A stretch of 64,000 nucleotides of DNA from Macrostomum hystrix (GCA_950097015.1 CATNEN010000001.1:10292001-10356000); one strand, 5' to 3'; shown: positions 6,501 to 64,000, numbered from the stretch's first letter. The notes: generated by a model from the letters alone, not told the origin. Translations and numbers: made by a program.

Positions 6501-6908
6501 CTCATCGTCAGTCAGTGTACACACAATCTGAGCACACACTCACACAGGTGTGTACATCTGCCACAGAATTTCTCATCGTCTGTACACACAATCTGGGCAC
6601 ACACTCACACAGGTGTGTACATCTGCCACAGAATTTCTCATCGTCAGGCAGTGTACACACAATCTGGGCACACACTCACACAGGTGTGTACATCTGCCAC
6701 AGAATTTCTCATCGTCAGTCAGTGTACACACAATCTGAGTACACACTCACACAGGGAAAATTGGTTAGTTAAGAGACCTAAGGTCTCCCGAGTCCTTGGA
6801 CTGAACAGTTGTACACAGTTTTTTGTCACTGGCTTTAAAATTTTAAATTAAATTTGTCAATTAATTTGAGGACTTATTTTACAAACTCCCCATCCAGCCA
6901 ATCCTAAT

Positions 6909-13872: not shown

Positions 13873-14221
13873 CCACCTTGGTAGTTCTTCCGTTAACTAT
13901 TTCTTTGCTAAACCACCTACAAATCCTTAAATATCCCAATCCAAACTCTTAATCCCCAGTGTCTCATTGCCATATCTTTATCTTCATTATCTGATTGTTC
14001 TGATACTTTTCCCACTTCTAAATCCTCAAATTCCATGTCCCAACTCCTAATCCACAATGCTCCATTCCGAATTTATGATCCCTTACATCGCATTCCCTCT
14101 TCTTATTACCTAATATCTTGATCGCACTGATTAGTCTTAAATATCCCATTCCCAGTTATTTATACTCTTAATTCTACACATTTATACATACTCAATTCTC
14201 AATCCTTAATATTATATTCCT

Positions 14222-15205
14222 ACTTCTAAATCCTCAAATACCCCTTCCCCACTTCCTAATCCTCAGATATCCCTTCCCCACTTCCTAATCCTCAAATATC
14301 CCATTCCCACTTCCTAATCCTCAGATATCCCTTCCCCACTTCCTAATCCTCAAATATCCCATTCCCACTTCCTAATCCTCAGATATCCCTTCCCCACTTC
14401 CTAATCCTCAGATATCCCTTCCCCACTTCCTAATCCTCAAATATCCCATTCCCACTTCCTAATCCTCAGATATCCCTTCCCCACTTCCTAATCCTCAAAT
14501 ATCCCATTCCCACTTCCTAATCCTCAGATATCCCTTCCCCACTTCCTAATCCTCAGATATCCCTTCCCCACTTCCTAATCTTCAAATATCCCATTCCCAC
14601 TTCCTAATCCTCAAATATCCCATCCACACTTCCTAATCCTCAGATATCCAATTCCCACTTCCTAATCCTCATATCCCATTCACACTTCCTAATCGTCAAA
14701 TACCCCATTCCCACTTCCTAATCCTCAGATATCCCATTCCCACTTCCTAATCCTCAAATATCCCATTCCCACTTCCTAATCCTCAGATATCCCTTCCCCA
14801 CTTCCTAATCCTCAAATATCCCATTCCCACTTCCTAATCCTCAGATATCCCTTCCCCACTTCCTAATCCTCAGATATCCCTTCCCCACTTCCTAATCTTC
14901 AGATATTCAATTCACACTTCCTAATCCTCAGATATCCCTTCCCCACTTCCTAATCCTCAGATATCCCTTCCCCACTTCCTAATCTTCAGATATTCAGTTC
15001 ACACTTCCTAATCCTCAAATATCCCATTCCCACTTCCTAATCCTCAAATATCCCATCCCACTTCCTAATCCTCAGATATTCAATTCACACTTCCTAATCC
15101 TCAGATATCCCATCCCCACTTCCTAATCCTCAGATATCCCATCCACACTTCCTAATCCTCAAATATCCCATTCCCACTTCCTAATCCTCAAATATCCCAT
15201 TCCCA
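14222..15205. repeat. 29-bp minisatellite (CTTCCTAATCCTCAGATATCCCTTCCCCA)n
   Basis: About 33 tandem units ending ~60 bp before the FBXO7 acceptor. Confidence 0.95.
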
Positions 15206-15269
15206 GTAGTAGTTTATACTTCTATATTTACTCTCTGCTAAAACCTCATACTGTTTAATCTCTCAGCGA

Positions 15270-18200
15270 ATGATGAAGCTTCGTTGCAAGCTGCGAGACG
15301 CCTCCAACACCAGCCAAATTGTTGGCTCGCAAACTGTGCAATTGTCCGACACGGCTAGCCTTAAGGATCTACTTTGCGCCGTTGCGGCACTGTACGGATT
15401 AACGCCAGCCGAAATTGAAATCAGCCAAAACGGACGCGACCCACTGACCGCGGCTCCCGACTCCACCGCCGAGATTGTCAGCGTTAGAAGCCTCGGCTTG
15501 GTGCCCGGCGATCTTATCTACATTCACTGCTTGACTACTTCTAGTGAGTAGTGTTGTTGTAGTGGCTAAATATGATTGCTTGCCTAAAATAGCCTGAGAT
15601 CAGACAAAAGCAAGATGTTATGGGAGTGATACGACTATGGAGAGATAAGAGACGGGAGATATAAGACATAAGTGAGATGCGACAGAGATAAGACACAGGA
15701 GAGAAAATACGGGAGAGATGAGACAGGTGAGATGAGACACGGTAGAGATGAGACACAGTAGAGATGAGACGCGGAAGAGATGAGACAGGGGAGAGATGAG
15801 ACGCGGAAGAGATGAGACAGGGGAGATGAGGCATGGGAAACTTGAGGTAAAAAAATGTGCCGGGCTGAAATAGAGCTGATCGGGCCTAGTGTCAGTATCT
15901 CCTCTCTGTGTCCAATACTTAAACAGAGCCACAAGTGTCACCGTCTTCAAAGGCATCGCCAGAAGCAGCAGCAGCAGCGCCCGCACCTGCAGCAGCAGTT
16001 GTGGTGCCAATTTTAGTCGGCGAAGTGCCCGACCGTGGCATTCGCCAGCTGTGTCCATCCCTGCAGCTGATGCAGCGACTGTACAACAGTTCCAACGATC
16101 AGCTGCTTCAATTCACCCTAGCCATTCATTGCCTGATGGTTGAAACTGGATTTCTATCCATTGAACCCGGCACTGGCCGAACACACCAGGAGATCCTGGC
16201 TTCCGATGTTGATCCCGCTGTGCTGGCCAATCGAGTTCTGACTCGCTATCTACTACCGAGAGATTTCAGTTCGGAATCTGCCACTGACAGAGTGTCTTAC
16301 ACTATCAACTATAGCTATTCCTTGACGCATGTTAATGGCAACGAATGGTTGCGCCAGTCTCCGCGCATCCGACTCAAAGTACTTCGGTCTGGCAAGCTGG
16401 CTATGTGTCATTGCGCCGTCTGGCGTCCTGGCAGCGAGGAAGCCGCTATGCTGTGCTGCCACTCTTGGCATTGCAATCTGAATAGATTTGTGCCTAACAG
16501 AGCTAGGAAATCTTCCAGCACGGCTGCTGCTGCTGCTGCTGGAGGCTACGAAAGTTTGCGACAACTGTCCGTTCTATTCAAAGATTCTGTGAGTTCTATA
16601 TTACTACTACTATGATCAAGCTTTTATAGTAGTATATGTGATATTTCACACGCGAGATAGCAATGAAATCCAAAAAAAAAATTATGCATTTATTTAGTGG
16701 AGGTCGGTGGCAGAGCGATTAACGCGTTTGCCTCTCGCACCAAAGTCCCTGAGCTCGATTCCGCGGCGAGGCCACATTTATTTCCCGCTAAAAAATAGGG
16801 ATGTTTCTTTGGGTGATTCCAGTTGGAATCTGCGGTGTTTCCACAAAAAGAAACAGCCGAACGCTGGAAACATACCAATCGGATGATTACATGCTTAGAA
16901 TCTACCCAACTGGGCGTTTTCTCGGTGCTTCTTGGTGGCGAAATGGAATCACCCAAAGAATCCTCCAGTTCGGAAGATTCGATGCTCAGAAACCGCCGAG
17001 GAATCGCCCGTAAATAATTCTCTGGTTGTCCCATGGGCCACTGGTTCGGGTGATTCTTCGGCGGTTTCCGCACAATTTACGGTTACATCGGCTGCTTCCT
17101 GGGTGGTTTCTTTAACTCTTGCTAGATAGGGAGGATTTAGGGAGGCTAGAATAGGGAGGCTAGATAGGGTAGATTCCACTCCTATTTTGCACAAAAAACC
17201 CGCCGAAGAAGCAGCCGAATTTTTTACAGGGTTAGGGCTCAAAGGGAAGGCTTGGGGGCTTGTCGTGCCATTCACGCCCTTAAGGGACGATGAGAAAGTC
17301 AGGCAGATGTACACACCTGTGTGAGTTTGTGCTCAGGAGTCAGCGAAATGGGCAGAATTGCCTTCTCGCTGGCTGGGGGTCTAGTGTCACCAAATGATGT
17401 GCCATTGCCCGCAGCCCTCCTGCAATTGTTATTATTACTATGCATTCATCATTGTGTATAGATACTGATGTCCATTGTTTAAACAAATAAGACTTGTACT
17501 TGTGACTTGTGACTTGTACTCAAATAATTAAAATGCATGCTGCTTTGACACAGTTTTTACCATAGACAGTGAGTAGAGGTAGAGGCTCTTTGGATTTTTT
17601 TATTCAAGTGGAGGAATAAAATATATCTGTCCCTATTTAATAGTACACTTGTAATATATAATAATAATATTCCATTGACTGGGGGAACGCCACACTAACC
17701 CTGAATTAGCCCACCCATTTAAAAACTAGTTGCACCGTAACAAGTTCCAGCGGACTCAAGAATCGAACCCCTGACCTTCAATTCTGAACCCTAAACTGTA
17801 CAGATAGCCGAGAGGGCCAAAGCTGCCATTCACGAAATCTGCGGCCTGCCATTGCTTGGCCTGACTGGCCTTCCCACCGAGCTGGTGCTGCGCATAATGC
17901 GATCCTGTCACAATGCCCGAACTGTCTGCTCACTGGGCGCCGCCTGTAGAAGATTGCAGATGCTGCACTCGGATAATTACATCTGGAGATCCATGCTGGT
18001 CAGGGACTATGGCACCGGCTCCGAGCGGGTGGCCCAGTATCTGGATGCCGAGCGACAGGTGCGAATTCAATATCTAGATCCCACCCGTCACACTATTTAT
18101 ATTATAGATCCCACTCAACTTTACCCCGTTCAACTAGATCCTATTCAACCAGATCCTATTCAGCAAGATCCTGTTCAACTAGATCCCACCCATCCCAATA

Positions 18201-19783
18201 TTTAGATCCCACTCAACTAGATCCCATTCAGCAAGATCCCACCCATCCCAATATTTAGATCCCACTCAACTAGATCCCACCCATCCCAATATTTAGATCC
18301 CACTCAACTAGATCCCATTCAACTAGATCCCACTCAACTAGATCCCATTCAACTAGATCCCACTCAACTAGATCCCATTCAACTAGATACTATTCAACTA
18401 GATCCCATTCAACTAGATCCCATTCAACTAGATACTATTCAACTAGATCCGACTCAACTAGATCCCATTCAACTAGATACTATTCAACTAGATCCCACTC
18501 AACTAGATCCCATTCAACTAGATACTATTCAACTAGATCCCACTCAACTAGATCCCATTCAACTAGATCCCATTCAACTAGATCCCACCCATCCCAATAT
18601 TTAGATCCCACTCAACTAGATCCCACTCAACTAGATCCCATTCAACTAGATCCCACTCAACTAGATCCCATTCAACTAGATCCCACCCATCCCAATATTT
18701 AGATCCCACTCAACTAGATCCCACTCAACTAGATCCCACTCAACTAGATCCCATTCAACTAGATCCCACTCAACTAGATCCCATTCAACTAGATCCCACT
18801 CAACTAGATCCCATTCAACTAGATCCCATTCAACTAGATCCCATTCAACTAGATCCCACTCAACTAGATCCCACTCAACTAGATCCCATTCAACTAGATC
18901 CCACTCAACTAGATCCCACTCAACTAGATCCCACTCAACTAGATCCCATTCAACTAGATCCCACTCAACTAGATCCCACTCAACTAGATCCCACTCAACT
19001 AGATCCCATTCAACTAGATCCCACTCAACTAGATCCCATTCAACTAGATCCCACCCATCCCAATATTTAGATCCCACTCAACTAGATCCCATTTAACTAG
19101 ATCCCACTCAACTAGATCCCATTCAACTAGATCCCACCCATCCCAATATTTAGATCCCACTCAACTACTCATAGATCCCATTCAGCTAGATCCCAATCAA
19201 CTAGATCCCATTCAGCTAGATCCCATTCAACTAGATCCCAGTTAACTAGATCACACTCAACTAGATCCCATTCAGATAGATCCCATTCAACTGGATCCCA
19301 TTCAACTGGATCCCACTCAACTAGATCCCATTCAACTAGATCTCATTCAAGTAGATCCCATTCAACTAGATCATATTCAGCTAGATCCCATTCAACTGGA
19401 TCCCATTCAACTGGATCCCATTCAACTAGATCCCATTCAACTAGATCCCACTCAACTAGATCCCATTCAAATTGATCCCACTCAGCTACATCCCATTGAT
19501 TTAAAACCCACCGTGTGTCGGCACCCTCTCGCAGGGTCTGGAGGTCAATTACTACGAAGCCTACCGGGTTTTTCACGAGGAGCGGGTGAAACGTCACCGC
19601 ATGCTGGCCCGACTGACTAGTCGCGAGTTGGCCCCGCTGACTCCCTGGCAAGATATGCCCGGTGTGCTGCCGCCATTCTTTTTGGGCGCTGCGCAGCCTC
19701 CACCGCTGCTGCTGCAACCAGAACAGCCGGAGGCACCTGTTTGGCCGCGGCCGTTGCAGTATTTCGCGCCGGACGATATTTGA
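15270..19783 (+). CDS. FBXO7: F-box only protein 7-like (UBL - FP/PI31 domain - F-box - Pro-rich tail)
   Basis: Exons 15270-15543, 15927-16588, 17804-18058, 19535-19783, phases consistent. N-terminal MKLRCK...LGLVPGDLIYI (UBL), AIHCLMVETGF...LSVLFKD (FP domain), LTGLPTELVLRIM...LGAACRRL..DNYIWR (F-box), Pro-rich C-terminus. Confidence 0.85.
15650..15835. repeat. Degenerate purine-rich repeat (GAGATGAGAC..)n in FBXO7 intron 1
   Basis: Recurrent GAGATGAGAC core. Confidence 0.75.
16699..17440 (+). mobile_element. tRNA-derived SINE family A, interrupted by a nested MITE
   Basis: tRNA-like head with A-box TGGCAGAGCG and B-box-like GAGCTCGATTCC. Body shared with 29967-30332. (TTA)n tail. Confidence 0.8.
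16784..17231. mobile_element. ~450-bp MITE-like element with CCC...GGG ends and nested internal hairpins
   Basis: Ends CCCGCTAAAAA / TTTTTACAGGG. Internal inverted repeats TTCTTTGGGTGATTCCA/TGGAATCACCCAAAGAA and AAACCGCCGA/TCGGCGGTTT. A second copy lies at 23390-23781. Confidence 0.75.
18104..19500. repeat. 15-bp minisatellite (CTAGATCCCATTCAA)n in FBXO7 intron 3
   Basis: Tandem copies with a recurrent longer variant. Confidence 0.95.
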
Positions 19784-19857
19784 CTATTTGAAATGGTCAA
19801 GCTGTGCCTTGGTTGCCGAGAAAGTTATAGATTTTATGTTTTAGGTTTGTAGGTTGT

Positions 19858-20650
19858 AGCTTTTAGGATTGGAAGGTAGGTTTTAGGATTGAAAGGTAGG
19901 TTTTAGGATTAAAATGTAGGTTTTAGGATTGAACGGTAGGTTTTAGGATTGGATGGTAGGTTTTAGGATTGGAAGGTCGGTTTTAGTATTTTAAGGTAGG
20001 TTTTAGGATTGGACGGTAGGTTTTAGGATTGGAAGGTAGGTTTTAGGATTGGAAGGTCGGTTTTAGGATTGGAAGGTCGGTTTTAGGATTGGAAGGTAGG
20101 TTTTAGGATTGAAAGGTAGGTTTTAGGATTGGAAGGTCGGTTTTAGTATTTTAAGGTAGGTTTTAGGATTGAACGGTAGGTTTTAGGATTGGAAGGTAGG
20201 TTTTAGGATTGGAAGGTCGGTTTTAGTATTTTAAGGTAGGTTTTAGGATTGGAAGGTAGGTTTTAGGATTGGAAGGTAGGTTTTAGGATTGGAAGGTAGG
20301 TTTTAGGATTGGAAGGTAGGTTTTAGGATTGAAAGGTAGGTTTTAGGATTGGAAGGTAGGTTTTAGGATTGGAAGGTAGGTTTTAGGATTGGAAGGTAGG
20401 TTTTAGGATTGGATGGTAGGTTTTAGGATTGGAAGGTAGGTTTTAGGATTGGAAGGTAGGTTTTAGGATTGAAAGGTAGGTTTTAGGATTGGAAGGTAGG
20501 TTTTAGGATTGGAAGGTAGGTTTTAGGATTGGAAGGTAGGTTTTAGGATTGGAAGGTAGGTTTTAGGATTGGAAGGTAGGTTTTAGGATTGGATGGTAGG
20601 TTTTAGGATTGGAAGGTAGGTTTTAGGATTGGATGGTAGGTTTTGCGATT
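19858..20650. repeat. 20-bp minisatellite (TTTTAGGATTGGAAGGTAGG)n
   Basis: About 39 tandem units. Confidence 0.95.
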
Positions 20651-20926
20651 AGGAGCTAGCTATCCTTTTCTTCATCTGTATTCATATTCGTATTTAAAGT
20701 GAGAAGTTCTCAAATCCGCCTTTGACACTAACTTTTCTAAGCTTTTTGTTGTGTTTATCTCGAAGTCATTCATTCAGCGAAGACAAATATACTCCTGCTG
20801 TACTACTTTTATCGTAGTTTCGACAGTAGCGATGCTGTATTTTTTTATTTTACCAATTTTGTCACTTGCATTCTGTACTTATTGTTATTTTGTGCTTATT
20901 GTCAGATTTTTAATTGGGAACTTTCC

Positions 20927-21455
20927 AGGATTGTAGGATTTTGTGGTAGGATTGTAGGATTTGGTGGCGGGATTGTAGGATATGGTGGCGGTATTGTAGG
21001 ATATGGTGGCGGGATTGAAGGATATGGTGGCGGGATTGAAGGATATGGTGGCGGGATTGTAGGATTTAGTGGCGGGATTGTAGGATATGGTGGAGGGATT
21101 GTAGGATATGGTGGTGGGATTGTAGGACTCGCTGGTAGGATTGTTGGATTTGCTAGCGGGATTGTAGGATTTGCTAGTGGATTGTAGGATTTGCTAGTGG
21201 GATTGTAGGATTTGCTAGTGGATTGTAGGATTTGCTAGCGGGATTGTAGGATTTGCCAGTTGATTGTAGGATTTGCTAGTGGATTGTAGGATTTGCTAGT
21301 GGGATTGTAGGATTTGCTAGTGGTATTGTAGGATTTGCTAGTGGAATTGTAGGATTTGCTAGTGGTATTGTAGGATTTGCTAGTGGGATTATTGGGTTTG
21401 CTGGCGGGATTGTAGGATTTGCTGGTGGGGTCGTAGGATTCGCTGGTAGGATTGA
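20927..21455. repeat. 20/21-bp minisatellite (GGGATTGTAGGATTTGCTAGT)n
   Basis: Tandem copies that drift in sequence along the array. Confidence 0.9.
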
Positions 21456-21568
21456 TTTTTAAATGTACTCTAGCATCAGTTATGTAGATATGTGGTGTTT
21501 CCGCCTCCCTATAGTCCATGGACTGAACTGTTGTACACAGCCTTAACATTTTTTCAGCCCAACTGACA

Positions 21569-21841
21569 ATGGCTTCGTCAGGCGCCAACCCGTCGCAGAT
21601 CATGCCGCTGGAACTGATGGACAAGTGCAACGGCTCCAGAATTCACATCAAGATGAAGAGCGACAAAGAGATAGTCGGCACCCTGCTGGGTTTTGATCCC
21701 TTTGTTAACATGGTGCTGGAGGATGTGGTTGTGTACGAGATGAGCTCACAGGGCAAGAAGGTCACCAGACTAGATGAAATACTGCTCAACGGTAACAACA
21801 TCGCCCTGATGATACCTGGCGGCGAAGGTCCCGACAATTGA
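21569..21841 (+). CDS. LSM5: U6 snRNA-associated Sm-like protein LSm5
   Basis: Single-exon 90 aa: [38 protein letters not shown]...[21 protein letters not shown]. Confidence 0.95.
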
Positions 21842-22169
21842 AGCCAATTTGAGTGTCAAGTTATTCTAGACTGGTTTCTATCTAGTTGCATTATGTAACA
21901 GTGCATTGTCATTTCCTGTGCTTTTTCATCTCAAATTTATATTTGTAGTTTTGGTATCTCGGTTAACAAAATTTGTAGCCGATTTAAGAATAATGTGCGT
22001 TTGTAATTGCAACAAATAAAATTTAAGCCTACTAGTGTCAGCTGGGTTTCCTATATAATACCATGCTATTTTCTCTCCGCTTTCTTCACCGTTTATAGAA
22101 TTGATTTTCTTTATTAAACACTGTTTTGTCTGTTGTGTGTCTCTGTGCTGAATGTCTGTCATTATTCTG

Positions 22170-30695: not shown

Positions 30696-33600
30696 TCAGG
30701 TAGCAATTGTGAACACATTGGGTGGCGCAGGTTTCGTAGGCTTGGCATGCCGCAGCGAGACGCTGGAGCCGTAGTCCAACTGACTCGGCGCGCCCGGCAT
30801 GTTGGCGATGTTTCTGCCGGCCATGGCCATGGCGTTCTCTGTCACCTGCTTGAAGGCCAGCTGGGCCTTGTGCCGGCGCCAAGCGCGCTGTAGAGTCTTG
30901 GCCGCAATGTCCTCCTTCTTGCGCCGCATTGTGGTCGAGATGGCCACGGTTCGCACTCTGGTGGGGAATGTGTCGCGGAATTTCTTTTCGATTTCGTTCA
31001 TGGTGTCGCGGAACTGGTCCGAGTCTTCAATGTCGCCGAGTACATTGCGCACCAGAGAGACCAGGATGTCCAGGCAGTGCAGCTTGTCGCCCTCGACGAT
31101 GGCGATGTCGAAGGAGGTCAGCGCGATGATGTTGGGTTTCGGTAGGCCCAACGGCTCTTCCAATTCAGCCACGAAGTCGGACAGCAGGTCGTATTTGATG
31201 TACTGCGAAGCGTGCGGATCATAGCGCTCCCAGACCTGGTAGAACATTTCAAAGTCATCCTCGGTGATGCCAACCTCCTCCTGCTCATGCGCCTGGCTGA
31301 AGTTCTCCAGAATGATGGCGATGTACAGGTTAATGACGATCATTCGCGTGAAGAACACGAAGGTGACCATGTAGATGATGGCCAACTCTGGTATAGAACA
31401 ATTGCCATTGCTGGACTCCTTAGCCACTCCGTTGCGAATGATGTGGGTGCTGTTGCAGTTTGGTGGCTTCACCATCAGGCCATCAAGGATGTCATTCCAG
31501 CCGGCGCTGGTTATCAAGCGGAACAGCAGCACCATGCTTCGGCCAAACGTCTCGAAGTTGACGAGATCGTTGATGGCATTGTTGTGAATGACGTTGCCCC
31601 AGAGGCTCATGCCGACGATGGCATAGATGAACACCACCAGTGCCAGGAGCGCGCCGATGTTGAACAGCGCCGGCAGGGAGATGATCAAAGCGAACAGCAG
31701 CTGACGGATGCCTTTGGCCGCTTTGATTAGGCGCAGGACTCGACCAATGCGAAAGATGCGAACCACTCGCAGCAGGGTTGGCTGGACGAAAGCGTTGCTC
31801 ACGGCGTCACTCAAGATGGCGCCTGGATATGAAAATTGTTGTCACAATGAATGAAGATTTTTGCAACCTAGAAATGCTCAAGAATTCCCATATATGGCAT
31901 TCCACTCACCAACAATGCTGAGAATGACAATAACAAAGTCGAACACATTCCAGGCGAAGCGGAAATAGTGCCAACGGAGACCGATAATCTTGATGATGGC
32001 TTCCACTGTGAACACGGCCGTGAATAGGATGTTGATCAGGTCCAAGCACTGTCCGATTGCCGGCTGCTGCTTGTAGTGATCCACCATCATGGCCACCATG
32101 TTTAAGAAGATCAGGATGACGATGACAAGCTCGAACTTGCTGCTCATGGCCACGTCAAAGAAAAAATCTTGGAAGCGATTCTGCGAGGCAACGAATAAAT
32201 AGTTCTTAATTACAAAGTAGCATAATTGGACTTTTGTTCTCTAATGGAAAAATGGCACATACCTTTGGTCGTTGCACAGTCTTCTGTGGCTTCTTTTTGC
32301 CCAACTTGCGCATTGTGTGATAGTAGCTTCTCTGGCTTGGTGTTAAGAAGATCTCCAACACGTTCTCCTTCTGAAATGGTTTAGTATTGAATGCGAGAAA
32401 GCCTGCATAGAAAGTGCACTTTGATCACAAAGCCGACGCAATTAATTTACCTTTCGTTTCAATGAGTAGAAATTGTCGATGATGACACCAATGAACAGAT
32501 TGAGTGTGAAGAAGGCTCCGACAATGATGAAGATGATGAAGTAGAAATAATAGCCCATTGATGCTTCCCTCTTCGGCTGCTGATCGACGCTCATGGAGTC
32601 GACGCCTGACTTCATCAGCTCCATCCAGCCTTCGAATGTGGCCTGCGTGAATAACGAATTTTGATTAATAATCATGTTGCTAGCTGCTTTGTTTGTTTGC
32701 TGTGAGTTGTCTAATCATCCACCCACATCTTTTGAGCAAGGCCTCCAACTCAAATGACCAAATAACCTAACCTAACTAAATCAGCAAGCGAATTATACGA
32801 CAATAATAACGCCAAAGTTAGGCGGCAGAAGTCATGCTTCAAGGTCTGGACGCGCACAATGGCAAGGCCTTCGGCAGTGTCCGGGGCGCCAGCGTCGGCT
32901 AAGAGGCAGTCGACGTTCCGCGACGACTTGACGCTCCAGCGCCTCCGTCAGGGTTCATTTTTCGGCGTTGTAAAGCAGGGCGATCTCGACCACCGCCTGG
33001 ACCAGCGCCGCTCTCTGGCGGTCAGGACTGCGGACTGCAGGATAATTCTCACAGAGCGGAAGGCTGCTCAGGCGAGCCCGCGGCACCAGACCGCTGACAG
33101 CGCGGTAGTCCTGTCAACTGCCTATCGGCGCCTTGGCAAAAGGTCGCGCTCTCGGTGTCGCTTGGCACGCAGAGCACGACGGTCTTCTGTGTGTCCACAG
33201 CTTGTCCAGCTGCCGCTGGGCGCCCTCGACAGTCTAGGAATAACTATCGCCCCTAACTATCAAAATCTAAAAACTCCGAGAGCTCAAACAATCAACGCTA
33301 AGCGACAGAAACACCAAATAGCAACCCACCCTGTACTAATATAAATCCGATGCCCAACAAAAAGCATCAGCTACCCGAACGTTTATCAAACCCATCCATT
33401 CATCTAACTGGTGACCCCGATACTCACGAGTTGAAACAAAGCCACGTAACCAATGAAGACGTTGTCAAAGTTGATGTTGGTATTCCTCCATGTATAGCCG
33501 GTTGTGTTCTCGCATTGGGACTTATTCTGCACTTCGGTGTAGCTCAACTGGTTGCCACCCGAGTCCTGGCAATAGTAGAACTTTCCCTTGAAGAATTGAA

Positions 33601-49300: not shown

Positions 49301-50437
49301 TAAAGATTTGGTATTAAAGAATACCAAAATGAAACGTTTATAAACACCGTAAAGAAAAGAAGCTTGGCGGAGAATAAGAAGGTTGACAAAAATTTTCCGC
49401 TTAGCCGTCACTGAGGGTATGCTGCCTATGGTACGCTATGCGTTACCATCCGTCTCTTGCGTGAGTGATACTGAAAGCGTGGAAGTGGGAGAAGAAGGAA
49501 CAGAAAATGCATGAGTTAGATGAGACAGGGGACGCAAACGGAGGCTTTTTGTAAACTGAAAAATTCCGCACAAATTTTTGTATTTCATATTTCATGGAAC
49601 TTACGTTATCGCTTAAGTACTCGTAACTTCTTTCGTTATTTTCAAAGATCGTGGCAGGATATCCTTGCTAGAACTGATATGCTTATAGCTCTTCATCAAA
49701 GTTACAGATTGGCCAAGTCACTTCTGTTGACTTGGTCAACTAAATTGATTTAAAGACTTTCATTTGAATTTCGATGTTTATTTCACACAGACAGAATTAA
49801 GGCTGTAAGTAAAAATGGCTATCGAATTGCTCACATTTTCGAGTATCGAGACAAAAAGACGAATTGAGGGGTTCCCCTTTGCTAGGGCTAAAAATATATT
49901 TCATCATTTTGCATTGGAAAATATCCAAAAGAAAATGTTGTATGTAATCAGAAAACTGCCACAAACAAAATGGCTCGAGATTGACCGGCTGGGGCAACTC
50001 TCAAAACTAAACTATGGTCGAACACTACTGTAACACTCTTTGCAGAAAGAATCAGAGAAACATTGCAGAGGATAATTCAAACATTCCAATTCAGTTAGGC
50101 GACCGTGGCCAGAAATCAAGGCAAGGTTTAGTGTGCTCAGATCAAACTTGCTTCCCGACAAGATCATGGTGAGCTCAGGTTGAGCTCTCTTGTGAGACGG
50201 CTGTTGTTCTCTGCTAGGTCGCATTGAGGAGAGTTCTAGATAATAAATACAGACTCAAACTGCTCAGACTAAATGTTGCGACCCGCCCAGTCCCCCGCGG
50301 CACTCAAATCAGGCCAACTCTGCGAGGGAAGTGCCAGAATTTTTTTTAATATGTTTTAGACGAGCTCTGCCAAGTTTGATTAAAAAGCAAATTAGCACGG
50401 CAAACCAAACAGTGCGCGGTGTTGACCTGAGCGACTG

Positions 50438-53400
50438 TCAGAAGAGGAGATGAGCACCGAGTCGGGACTGATCGCTGCTCTCCAAGATGACTCGATGCTC
50501 CTTGACGAGCTTCTCAGCCTCAGCTCGGCAGAAGTTACGGTGTTCCTCCCGCGAACTGTACCAAGCCAAGGTCAGCAGCTCTTCCAGGTCGGGGTATGTC
50601 AGCAGCTCTTCGCGCCACTGGTTCGCAGCCTCCTCATTCAGGCCAAAAAATTCGGCTTGCAAGCTCCAGGACAAGCACCGGAAGTTGGTGTAGATGTGAG
50701 ACGACTGCAGCTGCTCGGACAGTCTAGCGGTGAGCAGACTCTGTGTAAACTCTGGCAAAAAGTTCAAATTAAGTGGAAAGTCCAAAGTCCAGCTCGGAAT
50801 GCAGAAGCGCCAAGCCCAGTCTGAGCTGTCATCCTGTTCGATGCCGAGTCGAATTGAGTCCGGATGCCAGCCTCGTTTCACATTGTGACCATTCAAGTCT
50901 AGCAGTAGAGCTCTAGCTTCATCAGCCCGATCAAACTTCAAGCAAGTCATCGCCTTCAGACACACGGCAGCGGACTTGCAAGTGTCTGGCAGCTCATTCA
51001 GTTTGCTCATGATTTGCTGGAAAGTGCTTCGGCCACTGAATAGTTCTAGCAGAGTGTGCTCAACAGTCTGATATAACTTGCCGAGTTGGCTCGCTCCAAA
51101 CTCTGCTGTCTCTGGTCTAAAAGTACTTCGCCGAGGACTCAATGGAAGCCAGGTGAACGGATGAAAGTGCAGCAAATTGGTTTGGAGTGGCTGCAAGAAA
51201 TTAAATAGGTCATGGAAGACGAGCCAGATGTTGTTGTGCAGATGGTCTAGCTCATTTCTGACGCGCTGTTTGCAGGCCTCCAAGCCCACAACCTCAGCAT
51301 CTTTGACGTAAAGCCAGCACTCTCGCAAAAACGGGTGAGGCATTGCTATTTTATTTGAGTCGCTCTTCGCGTCTAGGAAGGCTATCATCAGGCGCAGGGC
51401 CTCTCGGAACAGTCGTACTAAGTTCTCCGTCTGCCAGACAGTCTCACCGTCGCTACTGTGCCTTTTTAGCATGTGAAGCAACAGTGACTTGGCATGGTAG
51501 CTCTTCAGGCCGAATCCGATTCTCTTCCTGAAGGTGAACTTTATCAGCACATACAGGTGGCCCTGCGTGTCATTCAGCTCCCTGATTTGTCGTCTTTCCC
51601 AGCAGTTTGAGCTGATTCGCAGCTCCCTCGAGCGGCCAGGACGCACCGCCCTGACGAGACTCTCGGGCTGGTAGATCAGGAGTGCGGACTCAGGACCCTG
51701 GCAGCAGGGAAAGGCGAAGCACAGGTCTGTCTGTGGACGAACCCCGCATGCAGGCGACGTCAGCGCCGGCTGAGAGCCTGCAAATGATCAATCAGTTCAA
51801 TAAACTGAACCGAATAATCAGATAATCAGCAATGCAGCAGCTAATAGAGTTTCAAGCCTTGATTTCTACACCTGCTGCTGCAGATACAAAATAATATAGG
51901 CGTGACTGTTGCGCCTGTTAATAGAAGCACTTTGCTGTTCAGTCTTACCATCTGAAACTGGAACTTGAGCGTAGCCGTCCTCGACTCGCAGCAGCTGGAC
52001 AGTCGTGTCATCGCACTTGCAGTATCCTTCCAAGTGATAGGGGTGACGATCGATTACAAGCGTCCAATCGATGTCTGAGTCGACTGGAACTCTGCCATCA
52101 ACTCTGTGCGGAATAATTCCCCAGACCTCTGAGAAGCTGCCAGCAACGATGATGTTTTCCCCAGTCACCGTCTTTGCCAGCTTTGACATGAAGTCCGCCA
52201 TGCAGGCAAGACCTGTCATTCGCTGTGTCGTGAAGCCCGACTGCACTAACATTTTTGCCAACGCTTGGCTCTTCTCGACATCGTATCGCCAAAGGTCGAA
52301 GCTCGACCGAGCACTGAAAGTCGGTAAAAAACTAAGTGAGAAATGGGCTTATAAAAAGTGTGTAGGATAACAACTCATTGTCATTCAGAATTAGGCAGAA
52401 AAAGCAATACGCAATGTTCTGAAGCGGTACAAAGCAGTGTGCTCACCAAAGAGTGCTCAGAATGTTGCTATGGTTTCTTTGTTCCGCCAAATTGGCACAG
52501 CTTCTGTCCTTGTGGTCGCGATGATTGATGTCGGAGCCCAGCCTGAGGAGTTCTTGAACAGCACACGCGTGACCCTTGATGCACGCCCATGAAAGAGCGG
52601 TGAAGCCATGCTTGTCGATGCGGGTGACGGATGCCCCGTACTCTACAAGGTTTGGAAGGAATGTGTGCTGTCCGTGCTTCGCTGCCATCATCAGTGCAGT
52701 TAGGCCGCTCTCGTCAGGTTCGTCCACGTCGACGAGATGTGGCAGCAGCTCCAATGCCAGACCAATATTTCCATTCGGAATGCACTGAAAGATTAGCTTC
52801 AACAGCAGACTAGGTTGCATCTGACGCAACAGTTTTTCATAGTTCAGAGGTCGGGGGTTATTCATTGTGAAACGGTTCAGCATTAGCACCAGCTCCTTGT
52901 TCTCAACAATCATGGATGCACAAATTGGGAGCTTCTCGCATAGATGAAGTGCATTCGCGTCTTTCATAACATTTAACGTTTCATACAAATAGAGTGACTT
53001 CATCGAAGCACTGATCGTAGACTCCAGAACTTCGCCTATCACTGTGACCTCGCTGGCCCTTACGAGGAGCGGCAGGATGACCACGCAGCATTTGTAGCGC
53101 TCCTCCTCACTACTAATCTGATGAAAAAACGCACCGATGCATCGCCAATGATTCAGTTTGGCAGACTGTTCGTGAGCCTTGCGGAAGCTTTCATCTCGCA
53201 TTGAATAGTTGGAGAGCTGCTTCACAATGCTCGATAGGCTGAGGATGCTTCTGTGGTCGCTATCGCGAGTCCATGCAGCAATTTGACTGTCAACAGTTGA
53301 TAAGCAATACCTGTCCCTGGCAGTGCTATTAGCCATTGACGCAATTATGTTAACTGCGTGATCAAATTGTCCCAGTTGAATAGCCCAGTCAGCAACTCGA

Positions 53401-54791
53401 GCACGGTGGCCATCAACAAGTTCAAAACGGAAGTCGCCTATCGATTGGAAGAACTGTGCTGCTTCTAACAACCTCTCTTGTTCGAACACCAAGTCAAGTG
53501 CTGCATGAAGGCAATGGTCTGCCACTGTCACCTCAACCAAACCTTTGATGAGTTCAGCAGCCCTTCTAGTTGAACCCTGTCGGATCATTTGCTTCGTCTG
53601 ATCAGCGCAAAAGCATGCCTTCGAGTTCTGATCCCACAGTCCATTAATGAATCGATGTGCAGATGCCAGCAAGTCCATATTGAGACTCACCGCTGCTGCT
53701 AACTTGCAGTACTTGTTCCTCAGTTGTTTATCAGGGCCAAGCATCTCAAGCGCTTCGATCCAGACAGCTGGTTGGATACTTCGGACAAAGTATTCAAGGT
53801 GTTGGCCATTTTTATCAGTGCGAGACAAAAGAATGGCTTCGATGAGACAAACGGACTGCAAGTCGTCTGACAAGGTAGAAAGGAAGCGGCAAGCTTGATT
53901 TGAGCAGCCATGCTCAACTGCTGTCCTCACGGCATAGATACAACAGTTCCTGTGCATTTGAGAGTCGTCAGTAAAGGATAGTATGACTCCAACAGTAGCC
54001 ATGTCTCCGATAGAAGCTGCACCATGGACTCCGACGAGCGGCTTTGGAAATTCCAACTGAGTCGCAATCTTAACGCAGCACTGTCTTCTGATGTGCGCAT
54101 CTCGAATGTCACCAAGAACTGACTTTGCAAGGTCTAGGTAGCCGCCTCTTGCTGCCAGTATGGCACACTTTGAAGCTGTTGTGTCTCGCGCCAGCTCATT
54201 GTCTGCTAGGCACAGAAGAATTCGCTGAGCCTTCTCTAAGTGCCCACCAGAAGCAGCAATTTTTGCCTCTTTCACGCACCATTTATTTCTAATTCTGCTT
54301 TCACTAATCATTCGAACTGTTTCGCAAGCTTCATCCACATGACCTGTACTGGCCTCTTCGCTGGCTTTTGTGCAGAAGCAATCATCTAGGTTTAGAGTTG
54401 CAATCGAGCTCCAGTTAGGGTCGGGTGAGAGTTTGGTTCTTGAGCACCACCTGATCGCTTCGCTTGTGTTTTTTATGCTGCGCACAAAGAGAGTCACCAT
54501 CTCATCTTGCCTGCAATCCAGCGCGAACTGTGCAGCATCCAGCAGGCATCGTGTCTGCTCTTCTGCATTAGAAATGCTTTCGGCTACGACCTTAGCATTG
54601 TGCCAGAGCCGTCGACTAAAGAGCAGCTTTGCAGTATGAATTCGGAGGCCGTCCTTCAGCCTGGGCTCGTCGGTGTCATCCAACAAAGACTGAAAAATCG
54701 GCAGTAGAATTCCTGTTCGCTGAGCCTCCACTTCCAGTGGGCTTGCATTGCAGCACTTCATTCCTTCGTCTGGCTGCTCAGCGTGCTGCAT
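50438..54791 (-). CDS. Helical/ankyrin-repeat - Mab-21/cGAS-like nucleotidyltransferase fusion (cGLR-like), ~1349 aa from ATG 54791
   Basis: Exons 54791-52447, 52313-51949, 51777-50438 join in frame (phase 2, phase 1). Ankyrin motifs GLTALMMAAKHG and GFTALSWACIKGH. NTase motif AGSFSE...DSDID, third acid in TDLCFAFPC, LRIS..WE, Mab-21 lobe LKSYHAKSLLL..W..ENL..LFREAL..MPHPF. The true N-terminus is uncertain. Confidence 0.8.
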
Positions 54792-54796
54792 TTCAA

Positions 54797-55769
54797 CTAC
54801 CTGCGCTGTCTGCTGCTCGGCAGGGCAACACCGAGTGCACTGATCGCACTAATCGATACTCTCAGTTCGGTTGGCATCGCCATTAAAAGCTGGTTAGTGC
54901 AATTTCTGCAGCTTGATATGCTACTCAGAGCGCTGTCTAAAACGCTTTGCTTTCTAGCCAAACCAGAAGCCTTTGAAATCACTGCAGCCGTCTCTGGCCA
55001 GTTTCCATGCTCAGCCGCAATCTTTGCTAATTTTTCGCAAAAGGAATCAATCAAGTTACCTGAAACTCTTAATTCAACCCATCTTGCCATTATACTGCTT
55101 GCAGTTTGCCAGTTTTTCTTTCGGGCCGCAGCCAATACCGACATCTCGAAGCAGCTATCGCGAGCTCTTTGAGTGTTGAGGCGGCCAAAGAAGTCTAGAA
55201 AGATCTCAAAATGACTCATGGAGGCTGCTAACTTGGCAGTTTCACAGCATCTGCAAATCCTGACTTGTGCGTCAGTGCTTTGGTTGAAGCTCAGACTCCA
55301 ACAGTCATTGGCTAATTGTTGCCAGCCCTTGAGGGCTGAGAGAAGAACTAGATTCCAGCAGTGCTCTTTCCTGGTGTCATCGTTGCTGATTTCTTGAAGT
55401 AGACGCACTGCAGTAGTGATATTTTCGGAACTAATAGCTTCTTGAGCCACTCGAATCAGAGCCTGGTCTCTCAGTGAAGTCACTTGGATCCCGTTGAGTA
55501 GCCTGAGAGTCGAGAATGTTAACAGGAATTCGGTTAGTTAGCTTTTGCGGCAAAACAGTCCAGTACATTAGCATGCTTTCATGAATGAATTCGGCCGACG
55601 TCGTGTCCTGTGAAAGATCGCATTCTATTAAAAACCGATTAATGACTTCTGTCGATTTGTTTACAGCGGTAACCAAAAGTAAAGAGGTGGATACTTTTTG
55701 ACCTTCAGTCACCCTTACGTGCTTCCTTCTAGTAGTCTTTGTTCTCATCACTGCAGCCAAGCAAACCAA
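54797..55769 (-). pseudogene. Frameshifted upstream continuation of the same helical repeat (broken N-terminal region of the cGLR-like gene)
   Basis: ORF 55483-54797 has the same repeat pattern (RKEHCWNLVLLSALKG, RDSCFEMSVLAAARK, DSFCEKLAKIAAEHG) but is in a different frame from 54791. ORF 55769-55431 is also out of frame with 55483-54797. Confidence 0.5.
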
Positions 55770-55914
55770 TGCGTCGATTGTAATCCAATGAGTTACTGGG
55801 AAACTATTTCAGAACTATTCAGAACTCAAGAACTATTTGACAGAAGTCATTAATCGGGTTTTAATAGAATGCGATCTTTCACAGGACACGACGTCGGCCG
55901 AATTCATTCATGAA
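55578..55914. repeat. 76-bp inverted repeat (55578-55653 / 55839-55914), 185-bp spacer
   Basis: Arms are reverse complements with one mismatch. Confidence 0.95.
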
Positions 55915-56027
55915 TTTACTTGTAATTTACTCGAAAGACGAATTCTACGGTGTGACAAATTGTACGGCAATAAACTTGGGCTAAGCTAAAAGTCTCGCGC
56001 ATTTGAAAGCGTTTGCTCTCAACTCAC

Positions 56028-56392
56028 CTCAAAGCGTATTCTTCATACTCCGTCATTTTTACTGCCTTCAGTGCCAGATCCACAATGACTTCCAGCTGAC
56101 CTTCAGGCAGCAAGCACCAATCTAGGAGTTGTCGTTGACCCAGTTTGTAGCCGCCATCGTTCAGCACAGACCGGCTGATGTCGCCAATGCATCTCTCGTG
56201 GATCTGACGATCTCTAATCGCTGCAACTATGGTCGCCGGTTCAAGTCTCACAGATGACAGCGAATCGATTCGAGTTGTGCCTTCGCTGTTAAGCTCGACT
56301 TCCGGCAGGCACGCAGACAAGTTGCTGCGGCCTGTGCAGATGTCCTCCACGATGCTTGCGTTCATCGAGTGGCGTTGACAATACCCGGCCAC
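56028..56392 (-). CDS. Probable upstream coding exon of unknown function (possibly first exon of the cGLR-like gene)
   Basis: 122-aa ORF with coding-like composition, ending at a consensus donor GAG|GTGAG. Confidence 0.35.
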
Positions 56393-58461
56393 GGTGGAGC
56401 CCTTGTTGAAGATAATTTTATGTATCTATCTAAGTTTATACATCTGCGGTCAGTTAACTGTTTTGTAAGACCGTGCGTCAGCTCTAATTTTAGCTACCTA
56501 ACTACCTACCTACCTAACCTGTGCTTTAACCCATTGAGTTGTGCTCGTGTGCGCGAGCCGGCTTGTCCGTTGGGTGACACGGATTCTATTTTTTAGCATG
56601 ATGTGTTCTTTGCGTGTGTATTTCGGATGTGAGTCTGTGAGTCTAACGTCTTTTTGTCGTCTATTTCTAACTTGTAGAAGACTGCTGGTAAGCCGCACGT
56701 ACAATCGGCAGTTTTGCTGAGTTGCCGTGTTTGAAACAATAGTACGGCCCGATGATGTTTATGAAACCGAAATCCTTCACGCTTGTCACTTGTCACCTGT
56801 GATTTTTCGACTTGTCATTTGTCACTTGTAGTTTCTTTATGAAATCGGCCTCTGTTAGTCTATGAGTAAACGTTTCAGTCCTTTTTTCCTGCTGTGGAAA
56901 GCAGCGCCTACCGTAGAGCCTCAATTTAGTGGTGGACGAAAAGGCTTAAGCCACTAACTGCAAAGCCTACAATATTTATTTTTGAAGCGATCGATATTTG
57001 AGGTAGGTTACAAGATAAATCAGAGCAGTGTACTTGGTTGGGTAAGAAGGAAGGACGATCGGACAGCGCAGGCGATGCACATGGCGCCTATAGGAGAAAT
57101 CACACCTACCATTTTAGGTTTTGGTATTGTGCGATGAAAGGTATTCCTCATCTATCTAAAACATTGGATTGTATACAAGGTGTGAAACAAATTCAAATTT
57201 ATGTAACGACCAAGCGGCGGCTGAAACAGACTGGAGTTCAAAGCAGAACTTACAAATTCTTAGAAACTGATTGGAAGTGAAAAAACTGCTTGAATGAAAA
57301 CAAAAACTGTGGGAAAGCCAACTATCAAAGCAGCCAAACGCACGGGGGGAGGGGGACGCCCCACCTCTGCCAACCCCTCACCCCCAGCCAACCGGCTTCG
57401 CCCGCGCACGCAACTAACAAGCTTAAACAACCAGCCAATCTGCGGCTGTGGCCAGAGCTGACCAAAAAGGGGGAAAGCAAAACCAGCCAATCAGCGGCTG
57501 TGGGGGGCTTGAAAACCAGGCCGGGCAGGCTAAACCGGTCAGAGCTAAGTCCAAACCGGCCTAGCCCGCCAGCCACGAGCGCAGATAACCTCCACCCAAA
57601 AAGTACAAGCACCAACGCAACAAACATGACCTCCACCAAAAAGTACATGCATTAAACAGCACCAACACAACAGCAGTTTGGTTGACCAGTTCACGACTCC
57701 TGCTGTAGTTCACCGATACGAATGCTAGATGAAGGCAATGCAGTCACCACACTTTGAATGTAAAACATAAGTGTTGTAAACCATCTGAAGGCACAGGTGC
57801 TTAGCTAACTTATGTTACCGCTTGGTGGTCTTTCTGCCGGCACCGTTGGGCTGGGTGGTCCGGTTCAGAAGGTCCATTGCTCCCATGCAGTGGCTTTGCA
57901 TCAGCACACTGCGACTTTTTTGCACAGAAACATACTGCCCAGCTCGGTTGATGGTCATTTTCTTAGTATTTGATATAAGATCCTTCGTGTCAATCATGTA
58001 TGGTGCCTTACTCCACTCGACTTTCTCTATACTTCCAGAACGCGCTCCGTCCTCATGAACACTCCACACAATGGCCATGCCTCAAAGCACAAGGACAGGT
58101 GGATCAATACCGCCGATGGTCGGCAGTCTCGCGCTGCTGTTCCTTGTCCCTCCACTGCCCTCCGCAAAGCCCTGCTTGTACTTAACCGCAGGGACATCAG
58201 GGTAGTCACAATGGCCCTCTCTGGCGACGGCTGTTTCACTAGGCACCGCTTCCTGCAAAGCAAAATCCACCGCATCCAAGCCACCACCGCATCTGCCAGA
58301 AGCAATGCCCGAGACGGTGCTGCCGACTGACACTCAGCCACTGACCAGCAGTGACGTAGTGCAGTTTGCTCGCCAGGCGCCGCGGGAGGACGCGCCCCCG
58401 GATTGGACGAGGTGCCTATGGAGGCACTGCGAGTCACGAGGGTCGAGAAGCGCAGACATCA

Positions 58462-63529: not shown

Positions 63530-64000
63530 ATGGGACAACAATTCAGCCTCAAGAGAGCTGCAAGACGTGGAGACCTAAAAACTGTTTGCTTCTATCTGAC
63601 ACTGGCCTGGGACAGTCAAAGGAGGAATAAAATTTGCGCAGACTGTTGTAAAACCGCAGCTGGTGAGGGTCATCTGTCAGTGGTGAGATTTCTGGTTCAG
63701 AAAGTTACCGACCGAAGCGTAAAAGATCGCTGCTGCGTGAGAGCTGCACAGTATGCTGCATTTAGGGGCCATTTAGAAGTGCTTCAGTTTCTTGTTATGA
63801 CAGTCGCCGACCAAAGCGTGAAAGACGAGTGCTGGGTACTTGCTACGAGATGTGCTGCAAGATCAGGTCAGTTCGAAGTTATTAAATTCCTGGTGCACAA
63901 TGCGTCTGATCAACACGTGAGAGATCAGTGCTGCTTGAAGGCTGCAGAATCTACTACAATAGATGTTGTTCAATTTCTGGTAAAGACAGTTGCTGACAAA
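63530..64000 (+). CDS. Cys-rich ankyrin-like ~35-aa repeat protein, partial (open to window end)
   Basis: Manual translation: RAARRGDLKTVCFYL..CCKTAAGEGHLSVVRFLVQKVTDRSVKDRCCVRAAQYAAFRGHLEVLQFLVMTVADQSVKDECW..AARSGQFEVIKFLV. No stop before 64000. Confidence 0.75.
   Translation, partial: MGQQFSLKRAARRGDLKTVCFYLTLAWDSQRRNKICADCCKTAAGEGHLSVVRFLVQKVTDRSVKDRCCVRAAQYAAFRGHLEVLQFLVMTVADQSVKDECWVLATRCAARSGQFEVIKFLVHNASDQHVRDQCCLKAAESTTIDVVQFLVKTVADK

Follow-up and report, generated by a model that had tools for sequence, protein, structure and literature searches.

A 64,000-nucleotide stretch of the Macrostomum hystrix genome, called here the window, carries on its minus strand a single gene of four exons and three introns (~56411-50438, counted from the window's first nucleotide). 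Its product joins a long array of ankyrin-type repeats to a nucleotidyltransferase (NTase) domain of the cGAS/Mab-21 type. With a probability of roughly three in four, we regard this gene as a member of an expansion of ankyrin-fused cGAS-like receptors (ANK-cGLRs) in macrostomid flatworms, of which the window copy has been disabled by a 22-base deletion, while a nearly identical twin copy elsewhere in the genome has kept its reading frame.

A spliced gene and a 22-base deletion

Six minus-strand open reading frames (ORFs) within 50438-56392 make up the gene. Splicing was assessed with transcript-derived Logan contigs from four public runs (X1-X4), all from a single study. Gaps in these contigs relative to the genome end in CT..AC on the plus strand, which corresponds to GT..AG on the minus strand. 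A preliminary description of this DNA had joined three ORFs in frame through introns at 52446-52314 and 51948-51778, and both joints are borne out by exact GT..AG skips in the contigs; the first of them, crossed by contigs of four runs, is the junction of ankyrin and NTase sequence. An additional intron absent from that description (56027-55503) is also skipped, joining a 122-aa ORF to a 228-aa ORF. The features of the gene are as follows (aa, amino acids; nt, nucleotides).

56028-56411, minus strand: exon 1, with the 5′ untranslated region and a 112-codon leader (first ATG at 56365, in-frame stop upstream)
56027-55503, minus strand: intron 1, 525 nt, GT..AG, skipped in contigs of 4/4 runs
52447-55502, minus strand: giant exon with an ankyrin-type repeat array of ~31 units of ~33 aa
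54844-54849, minus strand: point at which 22 bases that the twin copy and the X3 and X4 contigs contain are deleted, with a shift of the frame
54797-54799, minus strand: premature TAG brought into frame by the deletion, which closes the reading frame of the first ATG at 347 codons
52449-52925, minus strand: canonical ankyrin repeats at the array's end, ~4-5 units
52446-52314, minus strand: intron 2, 133 nt, GT..AG, skipped (52313>52447) in contigs of 4/4 runs
51949-52313, minus strand: exon 3, the NTase N-lobe (G-S at 52141-52136, DSDID at 52081-52067)
51948-51778, minus strand: intron 3, 171 nt, GT..AG, skipped (51776>51948) in contigs of three runs
50438-51777, minus strand: exon 4, with the third Asp, the Mab-21 helical lobe, a ~230-aa family-specific tail and the stop codon (50440-50438)
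50438-51646, 51866-52261, 52443-54791 (782 aa) and 54797-55483 (228 aa), minus strand: ORFs of the gene

All joints are carried by single contigs (X1 record 5; X2 record 6), and the ankyrin, NTase and Mab-21 exons, as joined in these contigs, form one spliced RNA. Contigs of exon 1 cross the joint 56027>55501 and extend to 56410 and beyond. Intron-free contigs cannot originate from genomic DNA, and the copies in the genome all bear the introns; the runs are therefore RNA-derived, and the gene is thus transcribed and spliced. A search for relatives of the exon 1 leader among the fetched paralogues found none. The Macrostomum lignano orthologue PAA72057.1 has ~107 aa before its array, which correspond to the leader exon. 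Intron 1 holds, in both gene copies, a ~340-bp element with 76-nt inverted ends (~55578-55653 and 55839-55914) that resembles a miniature inverted-repeat transposable element.

The 228-aa and 782-aa ORFs represent the same exon in two reading frames, and they are out of frame because 22 bases are deleted relative to the twin. This second copy (locus L012, G000:C1:10033978-10040397) lies 308 kb away and is 99% identical. Its giant exon (L012:2606-5680, minus strand) is one 1,025-codon frame without a stop, and the intact form of the gene has 5,118 coding bases, equal to 1,706 aa. The duplicated block is gene-sized only, corresponding to window positions 50022-56419 (~6.4 kb, 98.9% identity). 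Similarity between the copies stops at 56419, near the RNA 5′ end placed by the contigs, so the DNA upstream differs between them.

The twin locus and the contigs of X3 and X4 contain the 22 nucleotides; the window copy and the contigs of X1 and X2 lack them. Because gapped and ungapped forms both occur in RNA, an assembly error is unlikely. A micro-intron was also considered for the 22 bases and ruled out, since the genome copy does not contain them and no GT..AG pair bounds them. Translation from the first ATG ends at 347 codons, and hence before the canonical ankyrins and the enzyme. The window copy most likely represents either a duplicate that lost its function recently or a null allele; it continues to be transcribed, but most likely yields no enzyme.

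It is quite unlikely, by our estimate, that the window copy is functional after all, either because the 22-base gap arose artefactually in the assembly or the contigs, or because initiation at the ATG at 54791 gives a 1,349-aa form without the first third of the array. The ATG that opens the 782-aa ORF does sit right behind the premature stop, the joined frame that starts there runs for 1,349 codons with no internal stop, and apart from the gap the copy, 99% identical to its twin, shows no lesion. An artefact, however, is hard to reconcile with a gapped form that recurs in the RNA-derived contigs of X1 and X2 as well as in the genome, and reinitiation after an ORF of 347 codons is, as a matter of general knowledge, not expected in animals. 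In addition, a comparison of corresponding exons of the two copies counts 19 non-synonymous changes against 10 synonymous ones, a pattern that, small as the numbers are, would suggest relaxed constraint. Counting against a simple account of the disabled duplicate is that the Logan contigs mix variants of both copies, such that a given RNA may come from either copy and the deleted form may be a rare allele.

Ancestry of the repeat array

The preliminary description had divided the N-terminal part of the protein into a separate Cys-rich helical solenoid and a few ankyrin repeats. A helical array is indeed present, although its length is ~900 aa and not ~650 aa. The canonical ankyrins ahead of the NTase domain were recognized by Pfam as Ank_2 at aa 669-759 of the 782-aa ORF (E = 1.4e-15) and number ~4-5 units. 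The proposal of a separate module was abandoned on comparison with paralogues, which revealed homology to their ankyrin arrays along its length.

When the 1,025-aa exon of the twin is used as query, it aligns over its full length with the arrays of two paralogues, L025 (E = 3e-43) and L019 (E = 9e-40), at ~22% identity. With the canonical ankyrins cut away from both sides of the comparison, residues 1-860 still give scores of 93-95 bits against the paralogue arrays, with ~800 residues aligned, whereas the highest score among 30 shuffled sequences is 30.4 bits and the reversed sequence scores 21.6 bits. The array of L019, a frame of 1,810 aa, is itself matched by Ank_2 in 34 stretches (E = 3.6e-161). 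Its 33-aa units (CCKEVAKSAAIKGHLEVVKFLVPTIADQTLRDQ) carry the ankyrin consensus with CC replacing TPLH, and the pattern R.xCC..AA..G.L noted in the preliminary description is this CC-type ankyrin unit. A hidden Markov model of the 33-aa unit, built from the CC repeats of paralogues, gives marginal single-unit scores only on the array, and the comparison was therefore made by full-length BLAST with the shuffle control.

An AlphaFold model of the array exon (mean predicted local distance difference test [pLDDT] score of 74.6) consists of unbroken helix pairs, of 17 aa and 9-13 aa, that end in classic ankyrins. Several observations made on the array weigh against an ankyrin origin or would favour a new, non-ankyrin sensor solenoid in this ~900-aa Cys-containing region, and with it a new architecture of repeat sensor and second-messenger enzyme. 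The first ~860 residues have no match to any Pfam family. No match came from comparing residues 1-900 with 5.8 billion proteins in a word-based search, although the method is blind to distant repeats. Look-alikes in the ESM Atlas are weak and TPR-like (0.85-0.91), with recognition below the useful range. The modelled pairs of a long and a short helix with tight turns are also unlike classic ankyrin loops, and the structure searches covered only the last ~160-250 residues of the array.

A new solenoid is nevertheless very improbable in view of the full-length, shuffle-controlled similarity to arrays that Pfam identifies as ankyrin, and of the position of the paralogue CC motif, which occupies the place of TPLH within 33-aa ankyrin units. 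The same conclusion is favoured by alignment A3, in which a periodic ankyrin-type consensus (AAxxGxxxxVxxL....AD) is apparent, and by the array itself, which continues without a break into the canonical ankyrins. As judged from these sequence comparisons, a descent of the solenoid from ankyrin repeats is supported; most units would have eroded, and the last 4-5 are still canonical.

The enzyme domain

Each of the NTase core and Mab-21 lobe motifs named in the preliminary description can be located in the sequence:

52141-52127, minus strand: GSFSE
52081-52067, minus strand: DSDID
51727-51725, minus strand: third Asp (in TDLC)
51625-51611, minus strand: ELRIS
51508-51479, minus strand: LKSYHAKSLL
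51343-51329, minus strand: MPHPF

In a sequence alignment, as distinct from a superposition on cGAS, the G-S, D-I-D and third Asp residues fall in conserved columns of the family, whose consensus is GSxxEGWG...SDID. The interval from the third Asp to ELRIS, which had been singled out as unusually short, is in alignment A2 ~20-30 residues shorter than in most paralogues.

Assignment to the cGAS/Mab-21 class is based on profile, structural and active-site evidence. An initial profile search of Protein Data Bank (PDB) sequences with alignment A1 was swamped by ankyrin matches, and a second profile was hence made from an Ank-poor family alignment that includes both enzyme exons (A2). This profile matches 16 distinct PDB sequences, none of which falls outside cGLR1, cGAS and MAB21L1. 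The best match is cGLR1 (8gjy, E = 1.2e-5), cGAS sequences follow with E values of 2.5e-4 to 1.8e-3, and the alignment spans the helical-lobe motifs LKSYH.K, W..ENL and.H.F.

The fold was examined with an AlphaFold model of the M. lignano orthologue PAA83319.1 (P0001), taken as a proxy for the whole protein. This orthologue is 48% identical to the gene in both enzyme exons and 32% identical in the last 490 residues of the array, and its model has a mean pLDDT of 81, with values above 90 in the enzyme part. Foldseek matched the model to a ternary complex of cGAS, DNA and nucleotide (8sj2_C, E = 4.4e-5, 352 columns), ranked behind many DARPin matches to the ankyrin block. The orthologue model thus has the bilobed cGAS/Mab-21 fold. 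Alignments of both large models with VIA-align had the canonical ankyrin block in every top row and gave no information on the solenoid or the enzyme. The C-terminal tail, compared with the ESM Atlas, reached a best value of 0.83, which provides leads only and no fold name.

The Pfam and fold searches called for in the preliminary description gave a divided outcome, with Ank detected and cGAS matched through the orthologue model, and with the Mab-21 families falling short. Specifically, PF03281 (Mab-21 NTase) has no Pfam match on single exons, and Mab-21_C scores 21-23 bits on single exons against a cut-off of 24.1. These shortfalls, and the fact that fold support comes from a 48%-identical orthologue and not from the protein itself, speak against the assignment. 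We nonetheless consider that the A2 profile, the orthologue model and the retained catalytic residues together uphold the cGAS/Mab-21 identity that was first proposed from motifs.

Relative to human and mouse cGAS and to cGLR1 (8gjy), the gene shares the aligned motifs LKSYH.KT.., ..W..ENL.. and.HYF/HFF, and the catalytic G-S, D-x-D and D pattern. It departs from these proteins in the greater length of the loop that separates G-S from D-x-D, in the very large ankyrin array at its N terminus and in a tail of ~230 additional aa. The sequence match to cGAS is confined to the C-lobe, and a zinc-thumb region was not identified here, although no search was aimed at it.

Some of these peculiarities invite another explanation, in which the domain lacks catalysis and serves as a Mab-21-like scaffold, as has been suggested for MAB21L1/2, and the ankyrin array and tail make protein contacts without any nucleotide signal. 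Some ~8 more residues separate G-S from D-x-D here than in cGAS or mollusc cGLRs, the segment behind the third Asp is reduced in length, and the match of the genome's STING-like locus is below threshold (see below). A further point on this side, which also counts against classing the gene with cGLRs, is that the main text of the cGLR survey by Li et al. (2023, PMC9980059) names no Macrostomum enzyme among the active ones. Yet G-S and all three acidic residues are retained in the gene, its twin and the orthologue PAA83319.1 of M. lignano, across a deep split, and the same authors still listed M. lignano paralogues as cGLRs, with five cloned for their screen (PMC9980059). We therefore judge a scaffold role to be unlikely.

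An expanded family and its possible signalling

Of 177 candidates in the genome, at least 95 match exon 4, many of them in tandem clusters on contig C1, in agreement with the expanded family that the preliminary description had anticipated. Paralogues that were examined share the same layout of a giant repeat exon, an NTase exon and a last exon. The intron just before 'SQPA' is conserved: all eight paralogues inspected (L003-L010) keep it, and the reading frames of paralogues begin at this same place. The nearest paralogue in the genome other than the twin is 46% identical. Among 1.84 billion proteins, 75 representatives were matched, most of them long; the seven scanned by Pfam all have Ank and a weak Mab-21_C, and the database relatives that are named come exclusively from M. 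lignano. In some public members (P0004, P0011 and P0007) the ANK-cGLR module is accompanied by a caspase domain (Peptidase_C14, E = 1e-25 to 1e-27) or by a RING finger and a WSC domain, which may be genuine effector fusions or products of merged gene models.

Ankyrin-cGLR fusions are already on record, and the suggestion of an undescribed system was accordingly withdrawn. Li et al. (2023) reported TPR or ankyrin modules on some cGLRs (PMC9980059). In the supplement of that paper, Table S2 gives Ank_2 domains on M. lignano entries, Table S3 has the five M. lignano cGLRs cloned for the screen, and the M. lignano entries include PAA93208.1, PAA68676.1, PAA86972.1, PAA45980.1 and PAA57558.1 (PMC9980059). 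A literature search found no paper on Macrostomum cGLR function.

The gene resembles the catalogued ANK-cGLRs in its NTase signature (GS..E.WG....SDID), in the further motifs RPA.D, LRVS, GLK.YHAK and M.HFF, in its C-terminal tail and in the placement of ankyrins N-terminal to the enzyme. Identity to exon 4 is 44-46% for the #92/#93 type of paralogue, a subfamily to which two of the cloned enzymes belong. Unlike the catalogued members, the present lineage forms a deep branch, and its array of ~31 units is eroded to the point that Pfam recognizes only the last 3-4 repeats.

Much closer are the proteins of the BOX15_Mlig024769 group of M. lignano (PAA72057.1, 1,676 aa; PAA83319.1, a partial sequence of 1,068 aa), which are annotated as 'hypothetical protein' or 'Mab-21 domain-containing protein'. 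Accessions of this group do not occur among the listed supplementary rows of the survey (PMC9980059). Leader, array, ankyrins, NTase domain and tail are collinear with those of the gene, identity is 31% across the array and 48% for the enzyme, and the lengths are similar (1,676 aa versus 1,706 aa for the intact form). PAA72057.1 (P0082) is collinear with the entire array (E = 2e-141), and PAA83319.1 and the gene/twin pair are reciprocal best hits (390 bits, versus 324 for the next paralogue). The window copy differs from this group in being frameshifted and in belonging to another species. The collinearity of orthologous arrays in two species implies that this array is old and stably inherited, and is not a tandem array with fast turnover. 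The arrays of L019 and L021, which were examined unit by unit, are runs of near-identical units.

The preliminary description had likened the protein to an NLR. The logic of a large, lineage-expanded family that couples a repeat array to a signalling domain is indeed shared with NLR/STAND receptors, but the repeats are of the ankyrin type and not leucine-rich repeats. No NACHT, NB-ARC or other STAND module was found in any exon by Pfam, even at E values up to 10, and the gene is thus not a member of that class.

A second ANK-cGLR paralogue occupies ~63659-64000 on the plus strand and runs past the window's end; it is divergent and lies ~7 kb from the 5′ end of the gene. The exon-4 match of this neighbouring paralogue (L018) is at G000:C1:10358159-10359505 and has 43% identity in exon 4. 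Elsewhere in the window, 3590-6848 (plus strand) contains pieces of a housekeeping FAD synthase gene (MoCF_biosynth, FLAD1_M) whose best public match is the M. lignano FAD synthase, at only 58% identity, so that the genome belongs to a macrostomid species other than M. lignano. A voltage-gated cation channel exon (Ion_trans E = 1e-35, GPHH, IQ motif) lies at 30699-31814 (minus strand). An ORF at 7333-7953 matches the RTX nonapeptide with no single significant stretch and is likely to be of low complexity. Extreme GC skew, from -0.44 to +0.51 in 2-kb blocks, was recorded at 4001-6000, 14001-16000 and 18001-22000, and probably stems from strand-biased simple repeats.

Flatworms are reported, for the most part, to have lost cGLR signalling. 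A single STING-like locus was found in the M. hystrix genome (G000:C2:9104529-9104996; L011:1000-2010, minus strand), with an open frame of 337 aa. It aligns at the start of the ligand-binding domain ('FAWN..F.YL.L.LP.L'), and all 30 weak PDB matches of the frame are STING chains. Its score against STING_LBD, however, is 25-26 bits (E ~1e-5), just below the cut-off of 27, a point that counts against the proposed signalling.

By analogy with the family, the ankyrin array would bind a ligand or hold the enzyme inactive, ligand binding would let the cGLR domain make a cyclic nucleotide signal, and a STING-like receptor, for which the genome offers one divergent candidate, would read that signal. 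On this basis we infer that the gene may direct cyclic-dinucleotide synthesis and STING signalling. In a broader and rather doubtful scenario, macrostomids would possess a repertoire of about 100 or more ANK-cGLRs in which the arrays, in place of surfaces that bind nucleic acid, act as specificity determinants, and within which the present lineage would be an old, single-purpose receptor that recognizes a conserved ligand other than nucleic acid and signals through one highly divergent STING.

Little in these findings is new in kind, as both ankyrin-fused cGLRs and their expansion in Macrostomum were already on record. What the locus adds is a natural pair of intact and broken copies, which provides an example of birth-and-death dynamics in the family, and an eroded array conserved in an orthologue of ~1,700 aa in two macrostomids, by which some members of the expansion are old and stable. 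Moreover, a single STING-like locus that scores below threshold could receive signals from ~100 enzymes, in a phylum that has been described as mostly without the pathway.

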